Origin: Anthoceros angustus
Taxonomy: Eukaryota > Plantae > Anthocerotophyta
Length of the DNA: 64,000 nucleotides
Direction of reading: 5' to 3'
Assembly: GCA_010909165.1 (NCBI GenBank)
Contig: VJWM01000288.1
Location: 62,001 to 126,000, forward strand
The notes beneath the pieces are model-generated. The model searched no databases. It saw only the letters and a list, made by a program, of their open reading frames with translations, and was not told where the DNA came from. A program made the translations under genes and the position numbers. Numbering within the stretch: position 1 is the stretch's first letter; the number at the start of each line of letters is the position of its first letter. Below, in pieces: positions 4,791 through 62,224 of this stretch.

Positions 4791-4935
4791 ACCGCCCCCG
4801 TCATCCTAGGATAGAAGAGTGCTAAGTTACACTTGAGACCGCCCCCGTCATCCTAGGATAGAAGAGTGCTAAGTTACACTTGAGACCGCCCCCGTCATCC
4901 TAGGATAGAAGAGTGCTAAGTTACACTTGAGACCG
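4748..4935. repeat. Perfect 47-bp tandem repeat, 4 copies
   Basis: CCCCCGTCATCCTAGGATAGAAGAGTGCTAAGTTACACTTGAGACCG starts at 4748, 4795, 4842 and 4889. The copies are identical and have no spacers. Confidence 0.97.
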
Positions 4936-32575: not shown

Positions 32576-35500
32576 TGTGAAAGACCACATGTACACTAAC
32601 CCCTCTCCGAAGTGTCGGGATGAACGATTTTTTTTGTTTTGGGTGTGTTAGTATAGCAAAGTGCTTTGAGAATCGTCTGGGTAAGGCCTTTTATACGGGA
32701 ATGGTCCTTGGCCCTTGGTGATAATAATAATTTTTTTCGGTCCTTAGGTTTTGACCCCGGATAGGTAGGTCGGAAATAGAGTCCTTGGGTTTTGGTGATT
32801 TTTGGAATAAGAGGTGTCTATATATGCTAGGAATGCTCACAATATGCCACAGTTGGGTAGTCAAGTGGGGAGGTGGCTAGTTCCACCAGTGGCGAAGAGC
32901 AGGACGTCTGAGACCGAGGGGTTACAACCCTAGTGGCGGAGGCGGGGGTCGGGGCCTTGGCGAGAGAAGGACACACCCGGCCGGTGTGAATTTCGGGAGG
33001 CGTCGGAGGCGGGCTGCAGCAAGGCTGCGCGCATGCAAGCTGCTGGGCGAGTCTGTTTGTCAGGTAGAAGGCGTCAGTCAGTCGAGGCGGCGGCGGAGGA
33101 AGACAGTAGCAGCGGCGAAGGAAAGAGGCGAGGCAAGAGGGCCCGGTAGGAGTGGAAGAAGCGTGCAAGGGTGGTGTTCCTTTCGACTGGCCTCGCAGGG
33201 GTCGAGTTTTTTCTAGGAAACAAGGAGGAAGGAGATGGCGCCCAGCTGGTGAAATCCCTGTGGCCCAACATGGACCCTTTGGAAGGTGAGGCGAGAGTGC
33301 GGGAGCTGGGCTGGAATTTATGGAGAAGAAATGGTGTTCTGACGACATTGGTGCAAGAGTGCGCCTGCAATTGAGAACCAGTCGCAAGAGGCGAGGAAGA
33401 GGCATAAGCGGGATTTGGGGCTCTTTCGAGGCGATGTATGGGCGAAGCATCGAGGATGGGAGCTTGGTAATTGACCCCAGAGAAAGAAGACCCCGAGAGT
33501 CGCAGCCACGCCATGAAGCCTGGGAAGTGAGGGTGAACAATGGATGGGTGACTCGCCAACTCGTGTCTGCGCAGCTGGTGGGATTGGCCAAGTGGATTTT
33601 GTGTTTCCTGCAGAACCAAAAGTTGGATCATATGGCAGACCACTTCCTGGTCTTTCTTCATGAGGTGGTTAAGGGTACACAAATCGATTGGGGGAGGATG
33701 ATCTTTGAAAGAGCCTGTGAAGAGAAGGCGAATTTGCTCTCCCCTTCCCCTCGGCCCTCCTTGATTTCACCTTTTCTGATTCATGTATTCATTAAGTGTC
33801 TCGGAGTTGGAAGTTGTATACGCCTTCATAGGCGGAAACGGTCGGGGAACTCAAGGTAGAGGAGGAGGAGTGTAAGGAGGATTAGGGAAGGATTCCGGAT
33901 TGGGAATCGCCTCCCTAGAAGATTCGGATGAAGGTGGGAGGTTTCAAGGGCAAGCGGGCGGCGGCGAGAAGCATCGAGGATGGGAGCTTGGTAATTGACC
34001 CCGAGAAAGAAGACCCCGAGAGTCGCAGCCACGCCATGAAGCCTGGGAAGTGAGGGTGAATAATGGATGGGTGACTCGCCAACTCGTGTCTCACACCGGT
34101 GGGATTGGCCAAGTGGATTTTGTGTTTCCTGCAGAACCAAAAGTTGGATCATATGGCGGACCACTTCCTGGTCTTTCTTCATGAGGTGGTTAAGGGTACA
34201 CAAATCGATTGGGGGAGGATGATCTTTGAAAGAGCCTGTGAAGAGAAGGCGAATTTGCTCTCCCCTTTCCCTCGGCCCTCCTTGATTTCAGCTTTTCTGA
34301 TTCATGTATTCGCGCATTCCGGGTGTCTAACGGAGTTGGAAGTTGTGTCTGCCCTTCATAGCTGGAAACCGGTCAGGGAACTCAAGGTAGAGGAGGAGGA
34401 GTGTAAGGAGGATTAGGGAAGGATTCCGGATTGGGAATCGCCTCCCTAGAAGATTCGGATGAAGGTGGGGAGGTTTCAAGGGCAAGCGGAGGCGGCGGCG
34501 AGAAGCATCGAGGATGGGAGCTTGGTAATTGACCCCGAGAAAGAAGACCCCGAGAGTCGCAGCCACGCCATGAAGCCTGGGAAGTGAGGGTGAATAATGG
34601 ATGGGTGACTCGCCAACTCGTGTCTCACACCGGTGGGATTGGCCAAGTGGATTTTGTGTTTCTGAGCAAAAGTTGGATCATATGGCGGACCACTTCTGGT
34701 CTTTCTTCATGAGGTGGTTAAGGTACACAAATCGATTGGGGAGGATGATCTTTGAAAGAGCCTCAAGAGAAGGCGACTTGCTCTCCCTTCCCTCGGCCCT
34801 CCTTGATTTCACCTTTTCGATTCATGTATTCGCGATTCGGTGTCTAACTGAGTTGGAAGTTGTATACGCCTTCATAGCCGGAAACCGGCAGGAACTCAAG
34901 GTAGAGGAGGAGTGTAAGGAGGATTCCGGAAGGATTCCAGCTGGGAATGCGCCTCCCTAGAAGATCTTGGATGAAGGTGGGAGGTTTCAAGGGCAAGAAG
35001 CGGAGGGGCGCGACGACCGAATGGGGGTCGGCGAAGGAAGAAGACAGCGTGAGAAGAGGAACCTGACTACACCTAGGGTCACCAGTCGAAATCGGCGGGG
35101 AGCGGGTGAAGGAGGAGAAAATAAAGGAAGCGACAAGTTGTTCCCCTCTCGGTCAGGGGATGAGTCGCTGCCGCTAGGAGATTGGAGGCGGAGGAAGAGG
35201 CGTGGCAGAAACCCCTAGAAGAGAGGGTTAGTTTGGACCAAGTCATGACGGACTCGGGACATTTTGGCGACATTTCAACGGCCGTCCATGAAGTGGAGAT
35301 AGGTGACACCGCGTCGCGAAATTGTTGTGGAGGATGGGCACGAGGACAGCCCAATTCGATCTGAGCCGACTTGACCATGGCTCGAGGCAGGCGGATCTCC
35401 TCGACCAGCGACCATGGCTCTCACCGGCCGAGTGTGCGGGACAGGAGAAGTTGCTCAAGGAAAGTTGGAGACAGGCGAGAACAAGGTGGCGGAGGCGGCG

Positions 35501-38500
35501 AGGCAAGAGGCGGCCCTATGCAAGGCAGGAGGCGGCTAAGGGCCATGTCCACCCAGGAGGCCTTAGTGAATCGAGGTCAAGGGGCGCATGCTACAATTGA
35601 GGAGCTTCAAGATGAGGTCTCGAGTCCAGTGAGCAGGAAACAATGGCGCCCGAGAAATTCAAGAAGTCAAGAGAGATACAAGGAGAGAGACGAAGCTAGG
35701 CCAGAGTCAAGAGAGAGGCCAAACCAAGAAAGGCCGAGCAACGCCACGCAGAGCCAAGCAACCACCGTGGGGAAGTAACCACCACGGTGGCTAAACCGCC
35801 ACCGTCGGGGAAGGAGGAACCGAGGTGGGGAAGCCACCGGCTGTGAGTACCGCAGATGGGGAGATCCTCGAAACCCGAGCAGGCCCTGTGATTGTCCACG
35901 GGAGGAGAGGTAAGGACCTCAGACGAAGGGCGATTGCGCGCGCCCGGATGAGGATGCTCATGTCCTGCCGCTCGCATGGTGAGCGGTGCTCACTCTAAAC
36001 GTGTATGTGGTTGTTGGGACAGAGGGGCGTAAACCATCTGCACATCTTGACCGCCATGCTGCCACAAAGTGGTTCCTTCGAATAGGAGCTGGCGCCTACC
36101 TCCGCAAGTAGTGCCGGAGGAGATGAGCGAGGCGAGGCCGAGCATGGAGGGAGGAGCATACTGCATGTCCAAAGGAGGAGGAGCGGACAACGGATGTAGA
36201 GGCTAAAGCGCACGGAAGGCGCGAGGAAACCGGTGAGGTGAGAGCCGCACCGTGCGTGAGCTGGGCCCGAATTTATGGAGAAGAAATGGTGTACCAAAGA
36301 TTGGTGCAAGAGTGCGCCTGCAATTGAGAACCAGTCGCAAGAGGGCGACGCGAGGAAGAGGCCGAAGCTGGATGGGGCTCTTCGAGCAGCAGAAGGCGAG
36401 AAGCATCGAGGATGGGAGCTTGGTAATTGACCCCGGAGAAAGAAGACCCCGAGAGTCGCAGCCACGCCATGAAGCCTGGGAAGTGAGGGTGAATAATGGA
36501 TGGGTGACTCGCCAACTCGTGTTCACACTGGTGGGATTGGCCAAGTGGATTTTGTGTTTCGCAGAACCAAAAGTTGGATCATATGGCGACTACTCACTCG
36601 TCTTTCTTCATGAGGTGGTTAAGGTACACAAATCGATTGGGGGAGGATGATCTTTGAAAGAGCCTGTGAAGAGAAGGCGAATTTGCTCTCCCCTTTCCCT
36701 CGGCCCTCCTTGATTTCAGCTTTTCGATTCATGTATTCGCGCATTCCGGGTGTCTAACGGAGTTGGAAGTTGTGTCTGCCCTTCATAGCCGGAAACCGCC
36801 GTGAACTCAAGGTAGAGGAGGAGGAGTGTAAGGAGGATTCCGGAAGGATTCCTAGCTTGGGAATGCGCCTCCCTAGAAGATCTGAATGGGTGGGAGGTTT
36901 CAAGGGCAAGAAGCGGAGGCCGACGATCGAACGGGGTCATGAAAAGGGAAGGACAAACAGTAGAAGAGGAACCCACAGCTACACCTAGGGTCACTGTGTC
37001 GAAATCCGCAGGAACGCGGGTGAAGGAGGAGAAAAAAAAGGAAGCGACAAGTTGTTCCCCTCTCGGTCAGGATGAGTCGCTGCCGCTAGGAGAGATTGGA
37101 GGCGGAGGAAGAGGCAAGGGCAAACCAACCCCTAGAAGAGGAGGGGTTAGCAGCCAAGTCCGCGACGGAGCTCCGGACATTTTGGCGACATTTCACCGAC
37201 CCCCCCAAATGGGAGATAGGTGACACCGCGTAGAATTGTTGTGGAGGGGATGGGCACGAGGACAGCCCAATTGGAATCAGGAGCCCGACGCCCATGGCTC
37301 GACGCAGTGATCTCCTCGACCAGCATACCCATGGCTCTCACCGAGTGTGCAGGACAGGAGAAGTTGCTCAAGGAAAGTTGAGAGCCCGAAGGCGAGAACA
37401 AGGTGGCAGAGGAGCGCAGACGGAGCGGCGGCCCTATGCAAGGCATGGAGCGGCGGGCCATGTCCACCCAACAGAGGCCTTAGTGAATCAGTCAAGGGGC
37501 GATGCTACAATTGAGGAGCTTCAAGATGAGGTCTCGAGTCCAGGAGCAGGAAACAATGGCGCCCGAGAAATTCAAGAAGTCAAGAGAGATACAAGCGAGA
37601 GAGCTAGGCCGAGTCAAGAGAGAGGCCAAACCAAGAAAGGCCGAGCAAGCAACCACCGTGGGGAAGCCAAGCAACCACCGTGGGAAGTAACCACGGTGGC
37701 TAAACCGCCACCGTCATGAAGGAGGAACCGAGGTGGGGAAGCCACCGGCTGAGTACCGCGGATGGGGAGGCAGATCCTCGAAACCCCAGCAGCCGCCCGG
37801 ATTGTCCACGGAGGAGAGGTAAGGACCTCAGACGAAGGGCGACAGTCACGGTCTGATGAGGATGCTCATGTCACAGCCTGCATGGTGAGCGGTGCTCACT
37901 CTAAACGTGTATGTGGTTGTTGGGATGAGGGGCGTAAACCATCTGCACATCTTGACCACAAGGCCACAAAGGTTCCTTCGAATAGGAGCCGGCGCCTACC
38001 TCCGCAAGTAGTGCCGGAGGAGATGAGCGAGGCGGAGGCCGAGCATGGAGGGAGGAGCATACGTATGGCCGGCTGCATGAGGAGGAGCGGACAACGGATG
38101 TAGAGGCTATAGGCGCGCAACGTCCACGGGAAGGCGCGAGGAAACCGCAGGCAGCGAGAGCGAGGTGGACGTTTTGGGGGAAAATCGCTCGGATCAGAGG
38201 CGATAGGGGGATAGGGTGTTCTGAGAGCCTGCAGAGCTGTAGTTGCCTAGATTGGTAGGGGTGCTCGTGGTAGGAGCTACAATTTTTAGACACTGGAGAG
38301 AAGTGAGTTGTGCTTAACCACAGCTAGATGTATAAGAGACCCTTTGAGTGTCTCTCAATGATTTCGTGTGAACTTCCGTATCGAATCCTCGCGGGGTTGA
38401 TTGGAGACGTTCGTCAAGACCGAACGGGTTCGCACATCGCTTTCACAAGAAGACCGGAAGATCCCCGGATGGTCGAGAGCGAGTGGCCAAGCTCCACGTC

Positions 38501-39229: not shown

Positions 39230-39392
39230 ATTGGCTAGGGTGGGGAGGGCAGCAGATGCAGGTGTTCATGGATGAGGAGCTTAGAGCATGAAGAAAGGGA
39301 TGTAACTGGAAGACATAGCTAGGAGCGTTATTACACGCGAATTCAACAAGATGAAGATAATTCTCCCATGACTCTTGGTGACACGCAACAAA
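39230..39392 (-). mobile_element. Upstream continuation of the same chromovirus integrase (catalytic-core end)
   Basis: FVACHQESWENYLHLVEFACNN..PFFML..HP*TPASAALPTLAN. It joins the 32575 segment in frame when 32576-39234 is removed. Confidence 0.85.
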
Positions 39393-42300
39393 CAATACAA
39401 GGGAGGGAAGGGTTTTACAAAACCCCTTTTGTAAATGTCCCAATTTTTACATTGTCTAAAAGCCCTGTAAATTGATTTAAGTTTTGCTGATGTGGCAAGT
39501 TTTAAGACGCGGTTTACAATGGGGGTTTCTATTTGGATGAAGTGAGTGCTCATTTACAACAAAGTGGATTGATGACGTGGCTCCTGTTGTAGATTACATT
39601 GTAAAAGTCTTTTCTCTTTTGATCTTCATTTTTCTAAAACTCTTTATTACTATTATTAATTAAACAAATATGATTAGAGTCCATTTACAACAGCAATTGA
39701 TGACGTGGGTCCCTTGCTATAGATTACGTTGTAAAACCTTCTACTCAAATCTTGTTTTATTTTAATTTTTTTTAAAATATTTATTATTATTATTATTCAC
39801 AAAAAATGTGATTGGAGGCCATTTACAACAAAGATTGAAGACGTGGATCCTTTGTTGTAGATTACGTTGAAGTTCCTTTTACTCAATTTTTTTATTTTTT
39901 TCAAAAATCTTTATTATTATTATTATTATTATTATTTACGAGACAAAGGACAATCTAGGTGCGTATGATAGTTGATGACATACATGCAACTACGTAAACA
40001 TCAAGAAAACATGCAGGGCATGAACACCAAAAAGACGTGATCCTTTGTTGTAGATTACGCTGAAGTTCCTTTTACTCAATTTTTTATTTTTTCAAAAATC
40101 TTATTATTATTATTATTATTATTTACGAGACAAAGGACAATCTAGGTGCGATGATAGTTGATGACATACATGCAACTACGTAAACATCAAGAAAACATGC
40201 ATTTATGAACACCAAAATGCACGATAGGCACTTAAAGAACACAAAGCAATCGAAAAATAGCATGCCATAGTGGTCGGATTCGATTTCTTCTACGATCGCA
40301 CCCGCACTACGCGCACCGTGGGTGCCGGGCATGAACTTGTCGGCTCTAGGAGCCGGGAGCTTTCAAGACCGGCTTCATCTCTACATCCCACTTCATGAGG
40401 AACGAGAATCACGCATGGGTGGGCAAACATCAACCTCCTTGGGATAACCCCATCGGTTCTTGGCCATCATAGATGTTGTGGATGTCATTGTGTTTCGCTC
40501 ATGGCTTCCACAAATGCTACAAGTAGGTGAGACTTGCTTTGTCAGCCGCATTGAGCTTGGTCTAGAAAAGAATCATCCACCTCAATGAGCTGTCCGATTC
40601 TTGAACAACCAACTGGCCTTTTATATACATTTTGTTAGGTCTCTGCTCCTACACTTCCGAGGTCATCGCATGACCACCACAAGATGAAGATAATTCTCCC
40701 ATGACTCTTGGTGACACGCAACAAACAATACAAGGAGGGAAGGGTTTACAAAACCCTTTTGTAATGTCCCAATTTTACATTGTCTAAAAGCCTGAATTGA
40801 TTTAAGTTTTGCGATGTGGCAAGTTTTAAGACGCAGTTTACAATGGGGTTTCTATTTGGATGAAGTGAGGTGCTCATTTACAACAAAGTGGATTGATGAC
40901 GGCTCCTGTTGTAGATTACATTGTAAAAGTCTTTTCTCTTTTGATCTTCATTTTTCTAAAACTCTTTATTACTATTATTAATTAAACAAATATGATTAGA
41001 GTCCATTTACAACAGCAATTGATGACGTGGGTCCCTTGCTATAGATTACGTTGTAAAACCTTCTACTCAAATCTTGTTTTATTTTAATTTTTTAAAATAT
41101 TTATTATTATTATTATTCACAAAAATGTGATTGAGGCCATTTACAACAAAGATTGAAGACGTGATCCTTTGTTGTAGATTACGCTGAAGTTCCTTTTACT
41201 CAATTTTTTATTTTTTCAAAAATCTTATTATTATTATTATTATTATTTACTTAGACAAAGGACAATCTAGGTGCGATGATAGTTGATGACATACATGCAA
41301 CTACGTAAACATCAAGAAAACATGCATTTATGAACACCAAAATGCACGATAGGCACTTAAAGAACACAAAGCAATCGAAAAATAAGCATGCCATAGTGGT
41401 CGGATTCGATTTCTTCTACGATCGCACCCTGCACTCGCGCACCGTGGGTGCCGGGTGATGAACTTGTCGGCTCTAGGAGCCGGGAGCCAAGACCGGCTTC
41501 ATCTCTCTACATCCCACTTCATGAGGAACGAGAATCACGCATGGGTCTGGGCAAACATCAACCTCCCGCCTGAGCACCCCATCGGTTCTTGGCCATCATA
41601 GATGTGGATGTCATTGTGTTTCGCTCATGGCTTCCAAGTACAATACTACAAGTAGGTGAGACTTGCTTTGTCACCGCATTGAGCTTATTCAGAAAAGAAT
41701 CATCCACCTCAATGAGCTCACGATTCTTGAACAACTCGCAAACTCGCTCTTTTATATACATTTTGTTAGGTCTCGCCTTACACTCCGAGGTCATCATGAC
41801 CAGCCCACAAAGATGAGATGCGGCACCGCCTTCTTCATCGGGCCTCGCTCAGGATTTACATGGCTTGCAAGCGCACCAAGATTGATCAACACAAGAGTAG
41901 ATGCAAGAATGAGAGGGTACACGTGACGCATCGCGGGCCCGGCCATGCGGAGCGCGCGGCGCCGATGGCCGTCTGGCCGCTGCCACGCTGGTCCGGTGCT
42001 TGGGGCCAATGCCTTGAGCTCGCACATTCTGGATGTGTGTGTTTTGGTCTTCCTTTTTTCGGTTTCGATTGTGATGGCGTTTGGGGGGTCATCATGTACT
42101 ACTAGGGAGAGGGGTGTTTTACAAAACCCCTTTTGCAAATCTCCCAATCTTTACAACGTCTAAACACCTCCATTGTAAATTGGTTTAAGTTTCGCTAATG
42201 TGGCAAGTTTTAAAACTCGGTTTCCAACGGGGGTTTTTAGTTGGATGATGTGGCACTCTTTTGGGTGCTCATTTACAACAACGGATTGATGGCGTATTCT

Positions 42301-43744
42301 CCCATGACTCTTGGTGACACGCAACAAACAATACAAGGGAGGGAAGGGTTTTACAAAACCCCTTTTGTAAATGTCCCAATTTTTACATTGTCTAAAAGCC
42401 CTGTAAATTGATTTAAGTTTTGCTGATGTGGCAAGTTTTAAGACGCGGTTTACAATGGGGGTTTCTATTTGGATGAAGTGAGGTGCTCATTTACAACAGT
42501 GGATTGATGACGTGGCTCCCTTGTTGTAGATTACATTGTAAAAGTCTTTTCTCTTTTGATCTTCATTTTTCTAAAACTCTTTATTACTATTATTAATTAA
42601 ACAAATATGATTAGAGTCCATTTACAACAGCAATTGATGACGTGGGTCCCTTGCTATAGATTACGTTGTAAAACCTTCTACTCAAATCTTGTTTTATTTT
42701 AATTTTTTTTAAAATATTTATTATTATTATTATTCACAAAAATGTGATTGAGGCCATTTACAACAAAGATTGAAGACGTGATCCTTTGTTGTAGATTACG
42801 CTGAAGTTCCTTTTACTCAATTTTTTATTTTTTTCCAAAATCTTTATTATTATTATTATTATTATTATTTACGAGACAAAGGACAATCTAGGTGCGTATG
42901 ATAGTTGATGACATACATGCAACTACGTAAACATCAAGAAAACATGCAGACGATGAACACCAAACAGACGTAGGCACTTAAAGAACACAAAGCAATCGAA
43001 AAAATAGCATGCCATAGTGGCTGGATTCGATTTCTTCTACGATCAGACCCCAGACCACATGCGCACTGTGGGTGCTGGCATGAACTTGTCGGCTCTAGGA
43101 GCCGGGAGCTTTCTCAGCACTGGCTTCATCTCTCTCACATCCCACTTCACAGAGGAACGAGAATCACGCATGGGTCGGGGCAAACATCAACTCCTCCCGC
43201 CCGGATAACTTCTACTGGTTCTTGGCCATCATAGATGTTGTGGATGTCATTGTGTTTCTGTTCATGGCTTCCAAGTACAGCTACAAGTAGGTGAGACTTG
43301 CTTTGTCAGCCGCATTGAGCTTGGTCTAGAAAAGAATCATCCACCTCAATGAGCCTGCTGCTGATTCTTGAACAACCTGCAACCTGTCTTATATACATTT
43401 TTGTTAGGTCTCTGCTCCTACACTTCCGAGGTCATCATAGACAGCCCACAAAGATGAGATGCGGCACCGCCTCTTCTTCATCGGGCCTCGCTCAGGATTT
43501 ACATGGCTTAAAGCGCACAAGATTGATCAACACAAGAGTAGATGCAAGAATGAGAGGGTACACGTGACGGCATCGCGGGCCCGGCGATGCGGAGCGCGCG
43601 GGGCGCCGATGGCCGTCCTGCTGGCCTACACGCGCGGTCTGGTGCTTGGGGCGCCAATGCCTTGAGCTCGCACATTCTGGATGTGTGTGTTTTGGTCTTC
43701 CTTTTTTCGGTTTCGATTGTGATGGCGTTTGGGGGGTCATCATG
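39393..43744. mobile_element. CACTA-like left arm with subterminal repeats and captured gene fragments, tandemly triplicated
   Basis: Starts CAATACAAGGGAGGGAAGGGTTTTACAAAACC, similar to the left end of the CACTA at 43745. Contains TTTACAAC..GATGACGTGG..GTTGTAAA units. The unit restarts near 40681 and 42296. No matching right end found. Confidence 0.6.
43014..43290 (+). pseudogene. Captured C-terminal fragment of an NRT1/PTR (NPF) transporter; further copies near 40266-40530 and 41393-41655
   Basis: GFDFFYDQTPDHMRTVGAGMNLSALGAGSFLSTGFISL..WVGANINSSRPDNFYWFLAIIDVVDVIVFLFMASKYSYK* (one frameshift) matches the last two TM helices of NPF proteins. Confidence 0.82.
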
Positions 43745-46700
43745 TACTACTAGGGAGAGGGGTGTTTTACAAAACCCCTTTTGCAAATCTCCCAATCTTT
43801 ACAACGTCTAAACACCTCCATTGTAAATTGGTTTAAGTTTCGCTAATGTGGCAAGTTTTAAAACTCGGTTTCCAACGGGGGTTTTTAGTTGGATGATGTG
43901 GCACTCTTTTGGGTGCTCATTTACAACAACGGATTGATGGCGTGGCTCCCACGTTGTAGATTACGTTGTAAAAGCCTTTTTCTCAAAATTTGATCTTTAT
44001 TTTTCTAAAAACTTTTATTGATATCACTAATCACAAAAATATGATTGGAAGCCATTTACAACAAAGATTGAAGACGTGATCCTTTGTTGTAGATTACGTT
44101 GTAAAATCCTTTTTCTCAAAATTTGTTCTTTATTTCTTCAAAACTCTTTATTATTATTATTAATCATAAAAATATGATTAGAGGCCATTTACAACAGAAA
44201 TTGATGACGGGGCTTCCTTCTTGTAGATTACGTTGTAAAATATTTTTCTCAAAATGTGTTTTTTATTTTTTTAACTCTTTATTATTATTATTATTCACAA
44301 AAATATAATTGGAGGCCATTTACAACAGCGATTGATGACATGGCTCCCTTGTTGTAGATTACGTTGTAAAGTATTTTTCTCAAAATGTGTTCTTTATTTT
44401 TTTAAAACTCTTTATTATTGTTATTGATCACAAAAAATGTGATAGGAGGCCATTTACAACATGCGATGACGTGGCTTTGTTGTAGATTACGTTGTAAAAC
44501 CTTTTCTCAAAATTTGTTCTTTATTTCTTCAAAACTCTTTATTATTATTATTAATCATAAAAATATGATTAGAGGCCATTTACAACAGAAATTGATGACG
44601 GGGCTTCCTTCTTGTAGATTACGTTGTAAAATATTTTTCTCAAAATGTGTTTTTATTTTTAACTCTTTATTATTATTATTATTCACAAAAATATAATTGA
44701 GGCCATTTACAACAGCGATTGATGACATATCTTTGTTGTAGATTACGCTAAAAGTATTTTTCTCAAAATGTGTTCTTTATTTTTTAACTCTTTATTATTG
44801 TTATTGATCACAAAAAATGTGATAGGAGGCCATTTACAACAGCGATTGATGACGTGGTTCCCTTGTTGTAGATTACGTTGTAAAGAATTTTTCTTCAAAA
44901 TGTGAGGTGGAGGGTATTTTAAATTTGGTGGGGTTATTTTGTGGGGCATGATGAACGTGTCCATTCAAGAGTACGGAGGCGTGCCACTCTAAACAGACTC
45001 CATTAATCCCAGCCCTTACACACACCGCATGGAGAGGGAAAAGTCGAGGGGGCGCTTAGTGCTCTAATACTAGTACGTCGCGCTCTTTAGCATTTTCTTA
45101 AGTGTTCTTATTGTGAGCAGGTACCACCTCTATGCCTACAAGCAAGTGCGCACTGCCCCGATGGTACATGTTCGTACATGCCCACCTTTCGCAAGCCATT
45201 GTTGGGCGTTTGGGCGCCATTGTTAGGCGGTAATTGGGTGCCATTGTTGGGCGTTGGGCACCATTGTCAGGCGTTAATTGGGCGCTACTGTTAGGCGTTA
45301 ATTGGCCGCCATTGTTGGGCGTTGATTGGGCGCCATTGTTGGGTGTTGGGCGCCATAGTTGGGTGTTGGGTGCCATAGTCGGGTGTTGGGCGCCATAGTT
45401 GGGTGTTGGGCGCCTTTGTTGGGTGTTGGGCGCCATTGTTGGGCATTAATTGGGCGTCATAATTGGGCGTTGGGCGCCATTATTATTGAGCGTTATTTGG
45501 GCACCATTGTATGGCCAGCCATTGTCGGGCGTTGGGCTAAGGCTTTGGGGCAGACAATTTGGTGGAAGGTGTCCTCTAGACCCGACTTTTCTTTACCATT
45601 TTGTGGGGCTGCTTGTAGCGTGTCAAGTTCTTTACCATTTTGGTGGGGTTGCTTATGGTGTATCAAGTTCTTTACCATTTCGGTGGAGCTGCTTGTGGTG
45701 TGTCAAGTTCTTTACCATTTTGGGTCATGGTCCGTCAAGTCCGATGTCGTGAAGCTAATCTCGCTTGGCTCTATTGGATTTTGACTTGCATCTTATATTC
45801 CTCTTCACATGCATGTTGCTGTTGACCCTGCACATATGATGGCCTTCAAATCCAGGAGAATATCTAGTAGGAGGATCATCACAACCTTCAAGTGCAAGTG
45901 CAAGCGCATTCTACAATGCACTGCCTTGTAAAGATCGCACGAACTTACAAGGCATCGGCGGATTATGTTACAATATATATTGCCTTCATTTATCCTAATT
46001 TTAAGATTTTATGTATGCATTATTTTATGTAAATCTGGTCCCTAATTAGGGGCCCAATTTAGTTAAAATAATATGTATATATATACTGCCCAAACATTAG
46101 GATTTAAATGAAATGGATATAATATAATTAGATACGGTAATTATCATAGATTTATAATCTTAATTAGATACTTATTTAGTTAATTCCATCATTATTTTAT
46201 CAATATTATCATATATTGAATAAATACTCGTGTATCGTATAATATATGTGTATAATTTGATCTTCATATATTATACAATATAGTATACCTTATGTCAGTA
46301 CCCGTATGTATGAAAAAAAGATGTATACTATTTTTGTAGAATACGTATATATTTTAATGTATAAGCAATGTTGTAAATCATTGAGACGTGAATTTTCCAA
46401 GTTGTAATCTACCTTGTAGATTGTGTTGTAAAACTAGCGATTCACAAATTTTTGAGATTGTAAATGCGGTTGTAAACGACCTTGTAAACCACGTCGTAAA
46501 CGACGTGGTAAACGACGTCATAAACCACGTCGTGAACAACGTCATAAACTACGTCGTAAACAACAACGTCATAAACTACGTCGTAAACAACAACGTCATA
46601 AACTACGTCGTAAACAACAACGTCATAAACTACGTCGTAAACAACGTGGTAAACCACGTCGTAAACCTCGTAATAAATTACATTGCAAACGATGTTGTAA

Positions 46701-47144
46701 ACGACGTTGTAAATGAGGTTGTAAAGTAAGGGTATATGAAGGTTGTAAATGAGGTTGTAACGTATATTATAAAATACGTCGTAAATAGACCTACTTTACA
46801 ACCTAGTTAAGCTGTCAGACTACAACCTCCTATTAACAACCTACTTTACAACCTAGATTACAAGGCAACCACGTTGTAAATGGCGTTGTCATTTAGGTTG
46901 TAAACGAGCCCAACGTTGTAAATGGCGCTGTCATTTAGGTTGTAAACGACGCCATAAACCACGTCAGAACGACGTGGTAAACCACGTCAAGAACCTGATG
47001 ACGTGGCAATCTTGCCTGCCACGTCATCAATTTTACAACCTAGTTAAGCTGTCAGTTTACGAACGTGTAAATGCCCATTTTCACAATGTGAGGTTGTAAA
47101 TTATGTTGTAAAATACGTTGTAAAACACCTCGATTCTTGTAGTG
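43745..47144. mobile_element. Non-autonomous CACTA (En/Spm) element, 3.4 kb, TSD ATG
   Basis: ATG|TACTACTAGGGAGAGGGGTGTTTTACAA ... TTGTAAAACACCTCGATTCTTGTAGTG|ATG. The right end reads CACTACAAG on the minus strand. Dense TTTACAAC/GTTGTAAA subterminal repeats at both ends; no transposase. Confidence 0.88.
45200..45720. repeat. Minisatellites inside the CACTA: about 20-bp TTGGGCGCCATTGTTGGGCG units and 3x about 41-bp TTCTTTACCATTT..GTCAAG
   Basis: Direct inspection. Confidence 0.85.
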
Positions 47145-47577
47145 ATGACAGTTATGGGCATTTATCAGGATGCCCAAATGCATCACATGTGCCATATTTG
47201 GCTTATAGACGGTATATTCCGTATGAATTATATGCCTTTAGTAATCCCATATATATATATCATTTTCCTTTACTAATTTAGCTTCTTTATTTCAGCTCAT
47301 TAGTTTAAGTTCAACTTTCTTTTGAGCAACATATTTTCTTTCCCAACAGGAATTACGTAGCTATATTAGGCTTACTTTCTAGCCTATTTTCTCTCCTACT
47401 TCATAGTGAGAGGGAGTGATAAAATAATTTATTAATTAGGGCATCTAGAAATCCCTAGAATTAAACATTATTTAATTCATAGGGCTAAAAGTAGTTACTT
47501 TATTTAGTTATTAGTTATATTGGTTACAACCACCTATAACCACCTCTACTTTTTAAACACTTGTACTTTCTATCATT

Positions 47578-49269: not shown

Positions 49270-52200
49270 ATGAAGATGGCAAGCGCGAGGAGGAGCAAGA
49301 AGGACCAAGCAGACCCAGTCGCCAATCCGCCAATGCCGCCCCAGAAGCCAAAGAAAACTAGGGCTGCAAACAAGGCAAATACGGGAGCTCTCACCGGAAC
49401 GGAATTGTTCGAGGTGCAACCCACCATGTCTGCATATGAAGGCACTTTGCCAACACAATCTGCACACCCTGCAGGTGTGGGAGGGCATATTGCCTCTGCG
49501 GGGCAGGCAAAATTTGAGAGCATGTCTTCAGTGAAGAGTAACAGAACAAAGGTTGGTGGCGGACAAGGTGTGGAGAAGGTTGTGAAAAGTACGAAGCAAC
49601 CCGTGTCAGCCGCAATTCCTTCTCCATTCAGCTACGAGGACACGGTGCTCATCCGACGACTTGGTGGCCAGATTGACCCTGTTGTTATTGTGGAAAAGGA
49701 TTGGATGCTCAACCAGGATCCACATCTAGATGAGGAAAGTGTGCCATGGACGCCCTTGCTAAAACTGTGGATAATGGGGTACATGGGGGCTTTGCCCAAT
49801 CAAAGAGCTAGGGCTGGTTGGGTTATATGGGCAACAATGGACATCTATGAGGGAGAGCCGAGTTTACCTTGTTTTGCACCACCAAGCCACATGAGTTCGA
49901 GGCAGTAATCCAGGACCCTGATGTGTATAGGTCGTATGTTCTTAGTTTGAGAGGGTTTCACTCCAAGAAATGTGCACCTCGATCACTTGTCAAATAGTTC
50001 CGTTAATGCATGCGCCAGCATACTGTAAGTTGTCTGAAATGATAGTCTTGTTGGTTGCCCTTTGACTTTGATCAATGACCCATCTTTCGGTTTTTCGTTT
50101 TGTAGCGACCCTTAGTCGGAAGGGCACTCATCAGGGCTATCTGTAGGAAGATTACAAAGACAATTGTGGATCACAGAAGGGAGGTGTCCATGAGATGGGT
50201 GAGAGCAACAATGCATAGAAGTAATGAAGAGGCAGAAAATTGAGAGCCGAAGATTCCAGAAAGTGAGCTTGGCCCATCAGATGAGGAAGATGGCCCCATT
50301 CCAAATGTGCTAGGCCATTCGGATGAAGAAATGTTTGGGGGGCAGGATGAAGAACGGGATGCTATTGACCTACCCAGCTTGGCAATGCAGGGGCCGTCCA
50401 TGGTGGTCCCAACCATTGCGTACAATCCACATGAGATTCATGGGCGCCGGCCAGCCGGCGCCCATGCTGTGCTTAAGGTTGGAGCGGGTCCAGACTTGCC
50501 TACACGTGATCCAAACTGGTTCATCTAGTTTCAACAGGGGGATGCTGGACGGCGGCAGTCGGCCGGCACCCCAGTTAGAGCTTCTTCTGGCAGAACCCTT
50601 CCATGCGAGCATTGTGGAAGTGGCAGTGGTGGTGGCGAACCCGAAGATGAAGGCGATATAGGGGTGGAAAGAGGGGTTGGGCATGAGGTGGAAGCAAGGG
50701 GGCGCCGGCCAGCCGGCGCCCCCCACGGGTTTGCAAGAAGTGATGCCGGGCCGACGGCTGGCTTAAGAGGAAAGCGGACTGCAGCGACTTTGGATTCTAT
50801 TGATGGTACCAGGCAAACCCATAGTGGAGGCACAGAGGCAGGGAGGAAGAAAAAGAAAACAAAGAAGGTGGCAAGGCAAGAGGACCAGGATGCTGACATT
50901 TCAACTGTACATGTTTCTATAGATGAAGAATGGCTGGAGGACGCAATCAAAGATGCGGATCCCCTCACTCGCCCTAGGGATTCTGCATATGCGAAAGAGG
51001 GTGTCTTGGAGACATGTCTCCAAGCCTCTTTCGCATATGCAGAATCCAGAATGACCAATACTGTACAATATTGGTCAAATTGAAGAACCTAAGGCCAGCA
51101 CTGCACATAACTCCGGATGCGCAGATTTGCATGGTTGACGAGGCATGGGCCAACTATTTGGCGCATCTTATTTCTAAAGGAAGGACAGAAGAGGGTGTGT
51201 TGCCACTCCTATGTATGATTGATCCAAGTGAGTGTGATGCGCTGAGCAAGCTGGACTGGAAGCGATGACGGGGCGAAAAAATATGTCATGGGGGTTCTTG
51301 GTAGGAACCACAGTTATGCAACCATGAAACATCTATGTGATATCTCACCCAGGAAGAAGCGCTTCCAATATGTTGAAGCACATGCGTATTGTGGTCTTAC
51401 TGTTCCTGAAATATAAGTGTTTGCCACAGATCACAATACTATGTCGGACAAAAGAAAGAAGATGAACTTTATTGAGTAGGTCCGGTACTTGAGGGATGAG
51501 CTGCTGATTGCAAAATGGGAAGGAGTGTGGATGACCATGTCATGGAAGTTTAATCTGTACAAAGTGCTGGGATTGATTGAGGATGATGAAGGGCGTGAAG
51601 ACGACGTCTACAAGCAAAACAAATTGGACAATCAGACACACATTTTGTACATTGCCAAGCAGGAGGGTAAGGTGTGGGACAATGTAGACATGATTTTTTC
51701 CAAGTGGGAAGCGGGAGAACTACCGGAACAGAAGAAGCATTTACCAGCTAGGACAAGTGTTAGAGTACTTAATCAACACTCGCTTACTTATGGTTAGTTT
51801 AATAGGTCAGTTATATATTGAAGTGTCACATTAGGAGTATTTAGGTGAGAATGACTAATTTTATATTATCATTGCTTATTATTCAATACAACTTCTGTTT
51901 TTGTTCCTCTCTCCTCGCCCAGCTCAAGACCCAAACAACAAGCAAGAAAGGGAAAGGGAAGCTAAAGGTGAATGAGGAGCTGAAGCAAGTGGACACTGTT
52001 TACATGAAGCCTAAAGACATGTTGGCAAAGCCATGGAAATCCTTTCAAGGGATACGAGTTGGAGAGTGTGGGCAGCAAATTCTTATAACCACTACTGAAA
52101 AGGCGTTGATAAGACTTATAGATCTGAAGGGGAGATCACATTATGGAAGAAATTCCATGTCATACAAGTAGCGATGGTCAAATACCTGGGCTGCTCTTCT

Positions 52201-53498
52201 TTCGAAGAGGTTCAGGAAGAATATCCTTTGCATTCGACAGACCAGATGCTTGCACGCTTTCAAATTGCTTTTGCTAGAAAGGTGCATACCCTGCTCATAT
52301 GTGTCAACAAGAATGGGGAGGGCGCCAGCCGGCCGGCGCCCACCCCTTTGTTCCTTTGCGGTATTGACTAACAAACGTGTGATTGGCAATAACTCAAGGA
52401 TATTGAAGTTCTTTCAAAACTTCCAGATGTCTTCCAACATTTCATTTTTGAGGTTAATAATTGAAAAGGACTGGAAGACGAGTAGCGTGCTTTGGCGGAC
52501 AAGGACCTTGAGGAAGGATTGGAGAGCAGAGATGTTTTAGACATGCGAGGGTTTCTCAGAGGATGGAAGTACACACTTTTGGTGATAGACGCTCCAAGGG
52601 AGTTTCAAATCGGGGTTATGGACAAACGTATGGACAAGCAGATGATGGATACTGTTTTGCATAGCTTTGTTGAGAAAACCAATAGCGATGAGCTGAGGAT
52701 GATTGTGATACATGGTGTCGAGGAGACATACACTGTTAGGGAGTCCATGCGAAAGTGGAGCAGGAAAGGGGGCTTGGTCTCATTTGTGTGGAATAAGACG
52801 AACATGAACAATGATAGGGGTGGATTTGAAACCGTGGAGTATGTGATAGTGGGTTGGGGAGTGAAAGACGTGTGCACAAGGGATAAGGTTGCAATGATGC
52901 CAACTGCCATGCACGGGACTTTCAACAATGGAAGGTCTCCACATCGCTATGACACCGCTAAAGAAACAGTGTAAGGCGTCACATGACAAGTTGGTGGCGC
53001 CCATACCTGTAGGCTCGGGCTAATGATGAAACTTATCAAAACCTTCCAAAGAGGGATTGGGTTTGATTTGCTCGTAGTGGGACAACTTATCAGCCTTACT
53101 GTGGGGACGAAATTGTATTGCTATTGAGGCTGACTTAAGGTGTGCAGGATACATTCCACAATGAATCCATGGGTATGAGGTTCTGCCAGATGCTGACGAA
53201 GAATTGACCTTCAAGGCTCACCGCAGAGGATTTGCGCAATTCTAGGCAAAGGGGGTATCTCTTAGCGTGAAGGACTCTAAAAGTACAGGTGGTTTCTTTG
53301 AGTGCTCGTCGGATGAAGACCAAATCAGGAGCGTTCTTGGCAGAGGACCAACAAACCCTTCACAATGTGTGGCAACCTTCCCTGACTCCTTATGACGACG
53401 ACACTGGCGTGAACGAAGACTTAAGGGCTTTGGGTGAGAACGACAACTTCGATGAACAGGAACTAGAGCGGATTCAAATCACACTACAGGATTCGTAG
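49270..53498 (+). pseudogene. Decayed, probably intron-containing gene: low-complexity N-terminus, ParB/Srx-like domain, beta-class DNA amino-methyltransferase-like domain
   Basis: QICMVDEAWANYLAHLI..VLGRNHS (51300)..AYCGLT..FATDHN..MNFIE. Then LLVIDAPR (52588), FVWNK..VEYVIVG, LMMKLIKTF, DWV..FARSGTT (53067) and GRNCIAIEAD (53105). Multiple frameshifts and C>T-type stops. Confidence 0.68.
50978..51047. repeat. 70-bp near-perfect palindrome
   Basis: GGATTCTGCATATGCGAAAGAGG-GTGT-CTTGGAGACA|TGTCTCCAAG-CCTCTTTCGCATATGCAGAATCC: 23-bp and 10-bp perfect arms. Confidence 0.95.
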
Positions 53499-53760
53499 TC
53501 CGTGCACCATCGAGTCCATGTTAGCCCCGGCGAGTAGGTTTTTCTTTCTTTGGGCACCTAGATGTGCTTGTTCTCAGTGTTGGTTTTAAATTATATAATG
53601 GACGAGTTGCAGTGTGCCAATGGATTTCTTCATTTTGCCTCCTTTCTTAAAAACCCCGTGAAGGCGCCGGCCAGCCGGTGCCTTTACTGGATTTTATAGT
53701 CGTGATGTGTTCAAAACAGGCCTATACGTTTCCCATTTCCAGCCAAAGGGTCGTGATTAC

Positions 53761-56700
53761 TATAAACGATCTGGATTTGGAAACTCCCTGTTGAAAGGTG
53801 TCTTGGGGTGATTTTTTTTGTTTTCTTGTTAAGAATGGTGTTAAAATAAGTCAGGCTGACAGTAGGAGAGGGCATTTATGCTAAAAAGTGTCCTTGGCTT
53901 ATGGGGGTTTTTTTTGTTGTTTTTTAGGTTAGATAATAAATGGTCTTGAATTCGATGTTCCTTGGCCTTTGGTCTTGGGATATCCAATAGAAAGTCTATA
54001 TATGTGAGAGGGGATCCTCATATTTGGTAGAGGTTGCTAAGTCCATAGGTTGGAGGTCGACCCAACCAGGCGGTAGTCGAATAAGTGCAAGGTTGCGGAC
54101 CGAAATGGGTGGTGGCGATGTTCCGAGAACGGTCAGCGACTGGGACGGGCGGTCATGGAAGGAAGGAGCGGTCGTCGAAGGAGAAGTGGAAGCCGATCTG
54201 GGAGGGGAGGCATGTAACCCTAAGGAGACCGGAAAATGATGTATAAGTTCAAACGGTGGAGCGCAACGGCGGCTGGAGCGAGAGTGAGGGGAGCGCAACG
54301 GGCGGGAGCGAGAACGCCGAGGAGTCAGCTGGAAGAGTACTACGCGATCTGGAGGCGAGAGGGGGCAATCGCGAGGAGGACAGCCTCAACCCTCGCGCTG
54401 AGGAGCATGAGCTTGTCAAGGAGGACGGCCCTCACCGGCGGATTGCTGAGGAAGTAGGAACCCTGGGAGACTGACCCCGCCAGGAATTTTGAGGCGAGAC
54501 ATCACCGATTCGAGGCGCGAGGCAAGGGAGGTTGCTGCAGAGACATGGCGCCCAAAGCCGCAGCTGAAATTGTGACCGCCCAATGGCCAAACATGGACCA
54601 TTGGAAGGTCCGAGCTGGGGAATTGGTGAAGAAGTTGGGGCTTGGCTTCATGGAGAAGCGGTGGAATTATGCGAACTTGGGACCTGCAGAGGCGCCACCA
54701 TCCGAAGGACAAGCCCAGCGAGGGAATTAGAGCTAAGCCTCGTGGATTGGGACTCGGAATTGGTCAAGAAAGTGTATGAGCGAGGCGAGTGGTTTGGTAA
54801 TCGAGCCTTCTAAGAGGAGCAAAGAAGGCAGCAGCGCCTTGGTCAAGGCAGCGTAATTCGGGAGCCCAATGGTCGTTGACCCGAATTGGTATCAAAGACA
54901 GGTGATGGGCCGATGGCTCTCCGTTTCAAGACAAGAAGTGACTATTTGTCCGACCACTTTGTTTCTCCATGAAGTTGTCAAGGGGGCGAGGATCGATTGG
55001 GGGCGAATTCTCTTTGACAAGCTGTGTGAAGAGAGGTTGAATTTGATCCTCTTCCTCTCGTCCTTCTCTAATTATTGGTTCATCTGTATGCGCACACTAA
55101 CTGTCTGCTGGAGGTAGAAATTGTGGCCTCCCTTCACATGTGGAAGCCGGTTAGGGAGGTGAAGTGGAAAGCGGAGGAACCCAAGGAGGAAATAGAGGAG
55201 GAATTTGACAGCTGGGAGTCCGTGGCGACGGGCAGTTCAGAGGAGGAAAAGGAGATTGCCACCATCAAGAAGAGAGAAAGCCGAGAGGCAAAGTAGGCTC
55301 AACGAAGAAGGTGGAGACGCCACCAGAGTCGAAAGGCGCCGTGGAGAAAACCAAGAAAATGAGGGCCAAACGTGATTGATTCGAGGAGGAGGAGGCGCGA
55401 TCCGAGGAAGAGAATTTTGTTGACTTGGATGCAGATTACGAACCGACCCCGGAAGGATTAGGGTTGACCTCGTGGACCCTCCTGGATGGGAAGAGGTTTT
55501 CCGTGAACCCATTGGCAAATGAGGTCGACGCGGGAGAATTGGTTAGAGTGCGACCCCACCGGGAAGGAAGGTGCTTGACAGGGAATGGCGTCCGGAGGGC
55601 CTCCTCAGTGTGGATTTGAGCTAACCACATCTATGATCCGGGCCCAGTCAGATTTGTTGGACCAAGCTGCGTTGGCCCTCACATAGCTCAGCGTGCAAGG
55701 GCGGCGAGAGGAAGTGGTGAAGGCCCGATTTGAGGAGGAGGAGGCTAAGCGAAAGCAGGTGGAGGAGGATAAGCGGACCCTAGAGGAGATGAGGGTAAAA
55801 ATTCAGGAGGATTTGCGCAGTGCCCAAGAGGAGTTGCAGTCCATGACGAGCCAGGAAGCGCCATGGCCCAGATCAAGGACGCCCACGAGGCTAATCAAGA
55901 AAATGGGGAATTGGCGAGCCCAACAAGAGGCAGCCTGTGGAGAAGGCCCATAAGTTGGCGGACAGACAAGCGAGAGCATGAGGCACGTGGTTGAGCCGTG
56001 AAGGAGAAGGGAAAGGAAGGCAAAGATGTCCACCGGGTAGTGGAAGGACCATCAAGAAAGGAAGGAGCAACCGAGGTAGCCAAACACCTACCGAGTCGCC
56101 AATGACGACGGTCGTGGAGTCCACTACCGCAGATGAGAGCCACCGATTGGGGAGCCCAACTAAGGCCATGAGCGGCGCTCTGCCCGACGTAACATCTCGC
56201 GAGGGCATGGATCAGGGCAACCGTGTAGCCCACGGAGGAGGGGGCACCTCACCATGAGGGGTCCTATTATGTTGCGGCACATGGATGAGGAAACTTATGT
56301 TCCTGGTCTATATGTGAATGGGGAACGCGTGCTTAACCTCAGTGTCCATGTGCGTGTGGAAATAGGAGGGATCAGGGCCTATCTTCTACAAGTGAGGACC
56401 CGAAGTGGATACTTCTTCCACTGCGCCCGAGTGTGGGGATTGGCCCCCTATTATGCGGAGGCGATTTTGGAGGAGCTGACAAAAGAAGAAGTCCATGCAT
56501 GGGTGGACGAAGAGCCTGTAATAACCCTCAGCAATAGGCGACAGGCTGGAGTGGAGGGAGGTCAAGGGCAGGAGATACCCCCGATTAGGACGTCCACCAG
56601 CGATAGTGAGGTGGAGGTCTTGTGGAGGACCCGCTGATCGGGGCCGCGGGTGAGGGCTCGAGGCGGCGGCAGGAGGACGGCGTCAGGCGAAGTCTGGAGA

Positions 56701-60442: not shown

Positions 60443-62224
60443 ATGGTGAGGTGGTTGGGGAGTTCAGCGTGGATTTGTGTGCTGTTTGCGGTGCTGGCGA
60501 CCCTAGCAGAATGCTCAGGGCATGCTATTGGAGTGAATTGGGGGACTCTTTCTTCGCGGCCACTGTCACCGCAAAGGGTGGTTAAGCTCCTTAAGGACAA
60601 CAACTTTACGAAAGTGAAGCTCTTTGATGCGGATGAGAAAGTGTTGTTGGCTCTTGTAGGGAGTGGCCTTGAAGTGATGGTAGCAATTCCCAATGGTATG
60701 CTTCATGAAATGCAGAGCTTGGAAAGGGCCAAGAGCTGGCTGAGGGCCAATGTGTGGTTCTTCAGGCGATATGACAAACTGAACATGCCCACCGTGAACA
60801 TCGCGTAAGATTCGAGTTTTCCTGGCGTGCTTTCCACTGTCGCCTTGGCCAGACGCCTCTTCAGAGCCTTGGGAATTGGATTTCTTTCAGGCTTGTTGGA
60901 ATCGAGAGAACGTTAACGGAGTGGTTTGCTGGCTAGGTAGCTGGCGAGCAGAGCTGTAGAGCCTGCCTTTCCGGACTGTATGCTAGCTTTTGTCATTGCA
61001 AATTGAGTTTCTTGTTTAATTTAGAATGAGCTGTAACCAGACGGATTCTTCCTGTTCAGATCTTGTTCTCATGTTCAAGATGTTTTTTCTTGTAGGTATG
61101 TTGCAATAGGAAACGAGCCATTTCTCAAAGCCTATGACGGCTATTATGTGCCACTGGTCCTACCTGCCATGCGGAACTTGCAGCAGGCTATTGAAGAGGA
61201 CTCGTTGTGCAAAGGTTTTGTGAAGGTTGTGGTGCCCATGAATGCTGACGTGCTGACTGAGCAGTCAAATCGTCCGAGTGAAACAACATTTAAGCCCGAG
61301 TATATTGAGGATATGACCGGCATAGTTTCACACCTCAAGCAACACGGGTCCCCTTTCATCGTGAATATCTACCCATATTTGAGTCTCATCAACGATCCTG
61401 AGTTTCCGACGTCTTTCGCATTCTTCCTTGACAGCTATGCTGCTTTTGATGATGGAGGCTACAGGTACACAAATGTGCTGGAGGCCAGCCTTGACCAGGT
61501 TGCAAACGCCCTGGCTCATGTGGGAGCACCCGAAATGCCCATAGTCTTGGGGGAAGTTGGTTGGCCCACAGACGGTGAATTCAGTGCAACTCCTCTCTAT
61601 GCTCAGAAGTTCAATCAAGGTTTACTGGATCACTTCTTGCAAATGAAGGGCACCCCTAGACACCCCAACACAAGTTTTGATTTCTACCTTTTCGCACTTC
61701 TTGACGAAGATGCGAAGAGTCTTGGGCCTGGGAACTTCGAAAGACACTGGGGTATTTTTGACTATGCTGGACAGACGAAATACTCGCTTGACTTATCAGG
61801 CCGAGGCTTGAAGGTTCCTCTTGTTAGTGCTGGTCTGGAGGTCTTGGAAAAGAAGTGGTGCATTTTGAAAGAAGGAGCCGATGATCCTCGCGCGACCAAC
61901 TTCACGAAGTTACGAGCAGCCTACAATTATGCGTGCTCTCACGGTGGAGATTGTACAGTCACAAATGTTGGAGGGTCTTGTGTGTCTTTGCCTTTATCAG
62001 GTATGCTCTCCTATGCATTCAACAGCTACTACCAAGCAAAAGGGCAGGCGCACGAAGCGTGCAATTTCGATCGTTTGGCAACGGTCACGCGAGATAATCC
62101 AGAGACCAAGTACAAGTGTAAGTTTTCGATAGCTAACGGCGGCTCATCGACTCCACGGGTACTCAATTATACGTATGCACTGTTCGCGGCGTTATTGGTG
62201 CTTTCTGTCCAGCTTGAGGTTTAG
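60443..62224 (+). CDS. Glucan endo-1,3-beta-glucosidase (GH17 plus X8/CBM43, signal peptide, probable GPI anchor), 2 exons
   Basis: Signal peptide, IGVNWG, VKLFDAD, intron 60805-61095, [39 protein letters not shown]8 ([27 protein letters not shown]) and a hydrophobic C-terminus. Confidence 0.96.

Follow-up and report, generated by a model that had tools for sequence, protein, structure and literature searches.

A probable pseudogene from a rare eukaryotic family of intron-containing genes with a beta-class methyltransferase-like domain in Anthoceros angustus

We examined a 64,000-nucleotide (nt) stretch of nuclear DNA from Anthoceros angustus (GenBank assembly GCA_010909165.1, contig VJWM01000288.1, positions 62,001 to 126,000 of the forward strand), hereafter the window, in which a preliminary description made from the sequence alone had placed a transposon-embedded fusion gene, part ParB/Srx-like and part DNA methyltransferase-like, at positions 49270-53498. 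Window positions 51074-53206 (possibly 49270-53498) are probably a pseudogene that belongs to a rare eukaryotic family of intron-containing genes. An intact protein of this family would comprise an N-terminal domain of ~130 amino acids (with YxMYVLGGNHSF and ATDHN), a helical middle domain of ~150 amino acids, and a C-terminal beta-class methyltransferase fold. The copy in the window is dead and without function of its own; its value lies in leading to the gene family.

None of the window's own open reading frame (ORF) pieces matched a Pfam family even at E 1, so the identity of the gene had to be tested via relatives. These were found on Logan contigs L001-L005, from runs SRR33208241 and SRR33208242 (L005 from SRR33208242); word-indexed protein searches yielded five Logan ORFs and nothing else. 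With the 160-amino acid ORF at 52492-52974 as query, an exhaustive HMMER search of 1.84 billion representative proteins gave a sole match, the 288-amino acid protein P0001 (E 1.2e-4), and in a pairwise comparison the two matched with a BLASTP E of 1e-12; the degraded stretch at 53087-53206 is colinear with the P0001 C-terminus. P0001 and its paralogues P0002 and P0003 score 47.3, 30.0, and 50.1 bits against PF01555 (N6_N4_Mtase, cut-off 26.7), and a profile of these three relatives matches the solved structures of M.RsrI, MboIIA, CcrM, DpnA, and the rotifer N4CMT. When an AlphaFold (AF2) model of P0001 (pLDDT 69.7, pTM 0.75) was used as a Foldseek query, CcrM (6pbd) was the best match (E 2e-13), followed by HpyAVI, BceJIV, RsrI, and MboIIA (E 1e-12 to 1e-10), with N4-cytosine (N4C) enzymes ranking behind N6-adenine (N6A) enzymes at ~1e-9 (N4CMT 8s9m, E 1.6e-9). 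In every member of the family, DLPR or DAPR lies N-terminal to D-x-C-S-G-S-G or FARSGTT, which is the beta-class order. As judged by sequence and modeled fold, the methyltransferase half is a beta-class PF01555-type domain resembling those of CcrM and M.RsrI; the preliminary description had proposed just such a domain from the order of its motifs, and the Pfam, profile, and Foldseek matches of the relatives bear this out. We also considered chance coincidence of motifs and rejected it on the match between the window ORF and P0001 and on the colinear alignments with the relatives' contigs.

Upstream of the methyltransferase-like domain, window positions 51074-52296 are colinear with L002, L004, and L005 (summed tblastx E 3e-26 to 3e-37), the tblastx and tblastn blocks on these contigs covering 51074-51256, 51288-51731, 51941-52144, and 52129-52296. 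Motifs in the window were read by three-frame translation: QICMVDEAW at about 51122, LGRNHS at 51297-51314, then YCGL and DHN; the Asp of IDAPR at 52588, then FVWNK and VEYVIVG; FARSGTT at 53067, then GRNCIAIEAD. AG acceptors were confirmed at 50104-50105 and 51921-51922, and all of the motifs and acceptors (near 50105 and 51921) quoted in the preliminary description are present where it had placed them. The parts of the locus are as follows.

49270..49908, plus strand: 212-amino acid ORF from an ATG at 49270, with a K/P-rich N-terminus; the longest ORF of the region, with no Pfam match.
51074..51265, plus strand: first half of the N-terminal ('ParB-like') region, LRPA..QICMVDEAW..VLPLLCMIDP; a TGA at 51266 ends the frame; 34% identity to L004:833-1056 (E 7e-9).
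51270..51731, plus strand: second half of the N-terminal region (YVMGVLGRNHSY, ATDHN), running on into the beginning of the helical middle domain; frame +1 with respect to 51074..51265; in-frame stops at 51414-51416 and 51477-51479; 35% identity to residues 1-147 of the relative P0005 (E 2e-22).
51793..51922, plus strand: AT-rich stretch, putatively an intron or insertion, with a polypyrimidine tract, a CAG acceptor at 51920-51922, and a donor GT at 51793 or 51846; missing from L002 and L004.
51941..52284, plus strand: middle domain, WKSFQGI ... KKFHVIQVAMVKYLGC..EEYPLHST..FQIAFARK, broken by a frameshift near 52115-52147; colinear with L002 and with residues 156-279 of P0005.
52285..52398, plus strand: GT-AG intron of 114 nt, phase 0, with a CTAAC branch-like site.
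52399..52974, plus strand: N-terminal half of the methyltransferase-like domain, with D-A-P-R at 52588-52599, FVWNK, and EYVIVG; in-frame stops at 52462 and 52483, ORF end at 52972.
53023..53206, plus strand: C-terminal half of the methyltransferase-like domain in three frames, KLIKTFQRG / WV*FARSGTT / LSALLWGRNCIAIEAD...LPDADEEL; stops at 53061 and 53162 and two frameshifts.
53289..53498, plus strand: acidic 69-amino acid ORF at the end of the segment, with no relative found and no Pfam match.

The 212-amino acid ORF could be the 5' exon (exon 1) of the gene, and the acidic 69-amino acid ORF could be its C-terminal tail. The similarity of the former to an upstream ORF on L004 was matched by 75 of 1000 shuffles, and no relative was detectable for 49270-51073, the first 1.8 kb of the segment originally described. 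Compared with P0005, the window has ~185 nt extra between 51731 and 51941, which look like a lineage-specific intron.

The fusion of the upstream conserved region to the methyltransferase domain is real. L005 is L002 minus two segments, one of which, L002 748-945, is a canonical GTGAGT...CAG intron of 198 nt whose removal joins ...FQLSFANV to RVRSVGNL...DLPRGL in one frame. Because L005 joins both exons in frame, the N-terminal region and the methyltransferase domain form one spliced product and are not unrelated adjacent fragments, as the preliminary description had supposed in calling the two domains fused. It had also proposed GT-AG introns, and the window intron at 52285..52398 does lie within ~3 codons of the L002 intron and is identical to it in phase. 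At least four loci of the family (L001-L004), 35-66% identical at the protein level, occur in one sample of the other organism, and two of these four, L002 and L004, are interrupted by stops and frameshifts. In a comparison of this pair, the proportion of nonsynonymous differences (pN) is 0.22 and that of synonymous differences (pS) is 0.77, which is saturated; this contrast points to long-term purifying selection. The gene family exists in another eukaryote, where it contains introns and is transcribed. The second segment missing from L005, L002 528-674, is a 147-nt GT-AG segment that is coding and conserved in L004 and the window and that contains a stop and a frameshift in L002; its loss looks like cryptic splicing of a damaged, transcribed copy.

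The window copy carries at least five in-frame stops and at least four frameshifts, in agreement with the earlier statement that it is dead. In-frame stops were read at 51414, 51477, 52462, 52483, 52972, 53061, and 53162, and frame changes at ~51266, at ~52115-52147, and twice within 52975-53087; an additional frame change between 51731 and 51941 may be an intron instead of a frameshift. Motif I, which would bind S-adenosylmethionine (AdoMet), and the QKP motif are broken in this copy by a stop and frameshifts. In the window (51246-51268) and in L004 (1038-1059), the frame moves by +1 within the same ~20-nt stretch, where the first half of the N-terminal domain gives way to the second, and in each the old frame closes at a stop there (window, CGA TGA C; L004, AAG TAG G). 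Since the window copy and L004 both carry other lesions, the shared position is likely a coincidence in a variable loop, odd nonetheless.

Motif IV of the family is unusual. In an alignment that included phage and archaeal methyltransferases, with D-[P/I]-P-Y as the reference column, DLPRGL of P0001, P0002, P0003, and L004 falls at the DPPY column, where the window has D-A-P-R. The Asp and the second Pro are invariant across the family, and the classical motif (D/N/S)-P-P-(Y/F/W) was found in none of the five members that show the motif. VWxK, QKP (YQKP), D-x-x-x-G-S-G (D-x-C-S-G-S-G), and two Arg are conserved in the relatives. Because the Arg of D-x-P-R is kept across members only 28-37% identical, it is to be regarded as a conserved family character, and the window's DAPR reads in the alignment as an instance of D-[L/A]-P-R and not as a decayed DPPY; the preliminary description had considered a dead DAPR site possible, and decay as its cause is contradicted by DLPRGL in P0001-P0003 and L004. 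The second position of motif IV varies in phage enzymes too: the phage or viral contigs L007 and L009/L010 encode small PF01555 methyltransferases with D-I-P-Y for D-P-P-Y (DIPY in L007 and L009), so this position is already relaxed in some phage enzymes, and the unusual element of the family motif is the aromatic-to-Arg change. L009 also reads CVWEKTN after motif IV, near the family's VW[NE]K[TI]N.

How an intact member would work can be outlined conditionally. The protein would still bind AdoMet, its N-terminal and middle domains would bring it to nucleic acid, and methyl transfer would proceed with an altered active site, in which the Arg may contact the flipped base by stacking or hydrogen bonding; an AdoMet-binding, non-catalytic DNA-binding protein is the less likely alternative. 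The intact family might be a pseudo-enzyme that lost catalysis with the motif IV aromatic and persists only as an AdoMet- or DNA-binding module, an explanation that we find possible though on balance doubtful. D-x-P-R replaces (D/N/S)PP(Y/F/W) in all five members showing the motif, and inactive partners such as METTL14 occur in the wider clade (PMC4738411), but motif I, QKP, VWxK, and the motif IV Asp and Pro are all conserved, dead paralogues usually lose their AdoMet motifs too, and the Arg itself is conserved across copies only 28-37% identical. With Arg always at the position of the base-stacking aromatic, the family would represent a new active-site variant of the beta-class fold.

Several observations weigh against our preferred reading of a pseudogene from a family of fused, AdoMet-binding proteins of phage-type ancestry. 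The window ORFs have no direct Pfam match. We know of no active beta-class methyltransferase with Arg in place of the motif IV aromatic, so that methyltransferase activity of the intact family is a hypothesis. The proposed phage origin is drawn only from a generic similarity over the C-terminal motif region. For the N-terminal domain, searches gave nothing significant, whether ParB/Srx or otherwise, and its model reached a pLDDT of just 43.

The N-terminal region was the least tractable part of the gene. In intact relatives it reads ...MLPLLVVIDP...YHMYVLGGNHSFIARSRL...WIEANVLAGLT..EM..LATDHN...RK.FTF.DKVRYIR, and YVLGGNHSF...ATDHN can be placed in register with YDIVGGHHRHDAA of phage ParB proteins, with Ser at the Arg position. 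This region had no match in Pfam, NCBIfam, PHROGs, or the PDB sequences, and a tblastn search of 50,697 phage records likewise gave none. We compared it by hhalign with a set of two ParB sequences and then with a narrow set of 14 phage and haloarchaeal ParB domains; neither comparison was significant, although the latter put GGNHS under the G[GE]HHR box (P 0.43). A hidden Markov model (HMM) built from the 14 sequences gave the family -1.7 bits, a score reached by 15-27% of shuffles. An AF2 model of L004:1038-1943, made from a three-row alignment, had a pLDDT of 43, too low for a fold search. As every available copy changes frame midway through the domain, the two halves were searched apart; this and the narrowness of the ParB set make these negatives weak ones. 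The preliminary description's ParB/Srx-like core is therefore a conserved coding region whose homology to ParB/Srx found no support in profile, profile-profile, or HMM tests; its ParB/Srx identity is unproven, a resemblance at the level of motifs.

The origin of the family may be sought among phages or prophages: the ancestor would have been a methyltransferase gene of their type, possibly already a ParB-methyltransferase fusion, that entered a eukaryote and gained introns. What kind of gene it then became can be explained in more than one way. A lineage-restricted host gene family, established by one horizontal transfer from a phage or bacterium and intronized, with the window copy as a unitary or duplicate pseudogene and no mobile element involved, is conceivable, though we would not bet on it. 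Introns at a conserved position, strong purifying selection, a spliced transcript, paralogous loci with non-conserved flanks, and the lack of transposon hallmarks all fit such a family; the broken state of the window copy and of two among the other organism's four loci, the repeat-rich setting, and the absence of the family from annotated proteomes do not.

We give about the same modest credence to the gene being cargo or an accessory gene of a DNA transposon, which would have marked or bound its own element against silencing, the window holding a dead copy in a dead element. Several diverged, partly broken copies occur in one organism; no named homologue of the family was found among the annotated proteins of a 15-billion-protein collection, as is typical of repeat-masked transposon genes; the window copy lies among satellites and other repeats; red-algal PAG2/PAG3 offer a precedent (10.1101/2025.02.11.637652); and four GC palindromes are confined to the locus. 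On the other side, none of 60 ORFs across the window, including those at 45-58 kb, matched a transposase or other transposon Pfam family, and the tested ORFs of L001, L003, and L004 gave only a sub-threshold Helitron_like_N. No terminal inverted repeats (TIRs) or other inverted repeat brackets the locus, and neither target-site duplications (TSDs) nor a second copy of the gene were seen in the 64 kb. The flanks of L001-L004 have nothing in common outside the gene, the 35-66% identity of the paralogues indicates an old family with no recent burst, and Pfam searches found no SET or 2-oxoglutarate (2OG) oxygenase domain in the family. The earlier claim that the gene is transposon-embedded cargo thus stands without a transposase domain, TIRs, TSDs, or a second copy in 64 kb, and a role in escape from 5-methylcytosine silencing, which had been proposed along with it, is pure inference. 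The overall pattern of the family is compatible both with an old gene of a selfish element and with a dispensable gene family restricted to a lineage. As a separate observation, L001 carries two tandem paralogous ORFs (3361-4053 and 4537-5094; MEPPNKRA...GGD[ED]KFT[KR]QT...) upstream of the methyltransferase-only P0001, one of which is the source of a sub-threshold Helitron_like_N match (E 0.0085, 16.7 bits, cut-off 28.9).

A relic of an integrated giant virus (nucleocytoplasmic large DNA virus, NCLDV) or of another viral insertion carrying a ParB-methyltransferase-type gene is highly improbable: algal and prokaryotic viruses are rich in PF01555 methyltransferases and PHROG methyltransferase profiles match P0003 and P0001, but IMG/VR and the JGI metagenomes hold no close relative of the family, just generic matches to the motif I region, spliceosomal introns are common to the window and a relative, and no viral hallmark domains lie nearby.

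The GC palindromes and a hairpin are the other features of the locus itself.

50443..50462, no strand: GC palindrome GGCGCCGGCCAGCCGGCGCC, copy 1.
50701..50720, no strand: GC palindrome GGCGCCGGCCAGCCGGCGCC, copy 2, exact.
50978-51047: perfect hairpin with a 23-nt stem and a 24-nt loop, directly upstream of the first conserved coding segment.
52321..52340, no strand: GC palindrome GGCGCCGGCCAGCCGGCGCC, copy 3, inside the intron at 52285..52398.
53663..53682, no strand: GC palindrome GGCGCCGGCCAGCCGGCGCC, copy 4, with one mismatch, downstream of the last ORF.

The window holds four copies of the 20-nt palindrome, of which two are exact and two have one mismatch. They all lie within 3.2 kb, and from shuffled sequence zero copies would be expected by chance. 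The copies lie only in non-coding parts: 5' of the first conserved exon, in the conserved intron, and after the last ORF. Their flanks are unconserved, which makes the palindrome alone the unit. GGCGCCGGCCAGCCGGCGCC is absent from the relatives' loci, and these loci share no short palindromes among themselves. The arms of the hairpin, GGATTCTGCATATGCGAAAGAGG ... CCTCTTTCGCATATGCAGAATCC, end 27 nt 5' of the first conserved coding segment. parS sites cluster around parB, and by analogy the family might be a self-targeting epigenetic module of a selfish element, whose ParB-like N-terminal domain would read short palindromes of the element itself (in the window, the four GGCGCCGGCCAGCCGGCGCC sites) and whose DxPR methyltransferase would deposit an unusual mark on the element or close to it. 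Such a module would be a land-plant, one-protein counterpart of the red-algal PAG2/PAG3 cassette. We regard this reading as improbable.

The window as a whole is land-plant nuclear DNA, and the locus sits within a repeat-rich intergenic stretch with host genes on both sides.

482-3034, minus strand: intronless PPR-E gene.
About 8.6-15.8 kb: FAB1-like gene with FYVE, Cpn60_TCP1, and PIP5K domains.
Elsewhere in the window: AAA ATPase gene.
39300-47300: AT-rich satellite block upstream of the locus, with tandem and dispersed repeats.
54-57.7 kb: GC- and purine-rich repeat downstream of the locus, related to 33.3-38.1 kb.
61148-62224: GH17+X8 glucanase gene.

The introns, together with plant genes flanking the locus on either side, led us to reject bacterial contamination. 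Within the AT-rich block, units of ~130 nt and ~1.6 kb occupy 39.3-45 kb, GC-rich repeats of 20-24 nt lie at 45.2-45.5 kb, and a 12-nt repeat, GTAAACNACGTC, lies at 46.4-47.1 kb. A tandem unit of ~2 kb with strong G-over-C and purine skew fills 33297-38147; its ORFs have no Pfam domain, and a weak relative of it (66% identity) lies just downstream of the locus at 54944-55190.

To our knowledge, eukaryotes have taken up bacterial-type amino-methyltransferases on only a few occasions: N4CMT, DN4MT1, retrotransposon Dam-like enzymes, and red-algal PAG2. To these the present family would add a eukaryotic, spliced gene under purifying selection, in which a conserved N-terminal region with a putative targeting role is fused to a beta-class fold with preserved AdoMet motifs; if it proves transposon-borne, it would represent a further mobile element with its own chromatin- or DNA-modifying toolkit.

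Among known systems, the beta-class methyltransferases CcrM, M.RsrI, M.MboIIA, M1.HpyAVI, and M.BceJIV share with the family the fold, the order of motif IV before motif I, QKP, D-x-x-x-G-S-G, and VWxK. The family differs from them in its motif IV, D-[L/A]-P-R, in being encoded by a eukaryotic gene with introns, and in its large N-terminal additions, and the window copy differs further in being broken. The bacterial-type beta-class methyltransferases recruited into eukaryotes, N4CMT in bdelloid rotifers and MpDN4MT1 in Marchantia sperm, are alike in that history, yet they have a (T)SPPY motif IV (TSPPY in DN4MT1; 10.1101/2021.02.12.428880), lack a ParB-like part, and come after N6A enzymes whether the family is searched by sequence or by fold. 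The link to DN4MT1 and N4CMT drawn in the preliminary description is not supported, given DxPR versus SPPY and the higher rank of N6A over N4C enzymes.

ParB-N6_N4 methyltransferase fusions are common in phages and prophages (PMC12704722; PMC4738411), and those of phages, prophages, and archaeal viruses (for example the PhiCh1, phiH, and HSTV-1 methyltransferases) show the same order of parts: an N-terminal domain of ~130 amino acids, a linker, and a beta-class methyltransferase. In hhalign alignments, GGNHS and DHN of the family fall in register with G[GE]HHR and a downstream N of these viral proteins. The N-terminal similarity is, however, not significant, the family has Ser for the Arg of GxxR, and the viral enzymes keep DPPY.

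PAG2 (PF01555 plus SET) and PAG3 (ParB-like plus 2OG oxygenase) are accessory genes of red-algal Plavaka, Mutator, and Zisupton elements; inverted-repeat arrays adjoin PAG3, and the genes occur in many copies, most of them degenerate (10.1101/2025.02.11.637652). Compared by description only, these genes resemble the present family in being eukaryotic, in having PF01555-type and ParB-like modules, and in the inverted repeats nearby, which recall the four GC palindromes of the window. They differ in that PAG2 and PAG3 are separate, transposon-borne genes with SET and 2OG partners, whereas here the two modules lie in one polypeptide that has neither partner.

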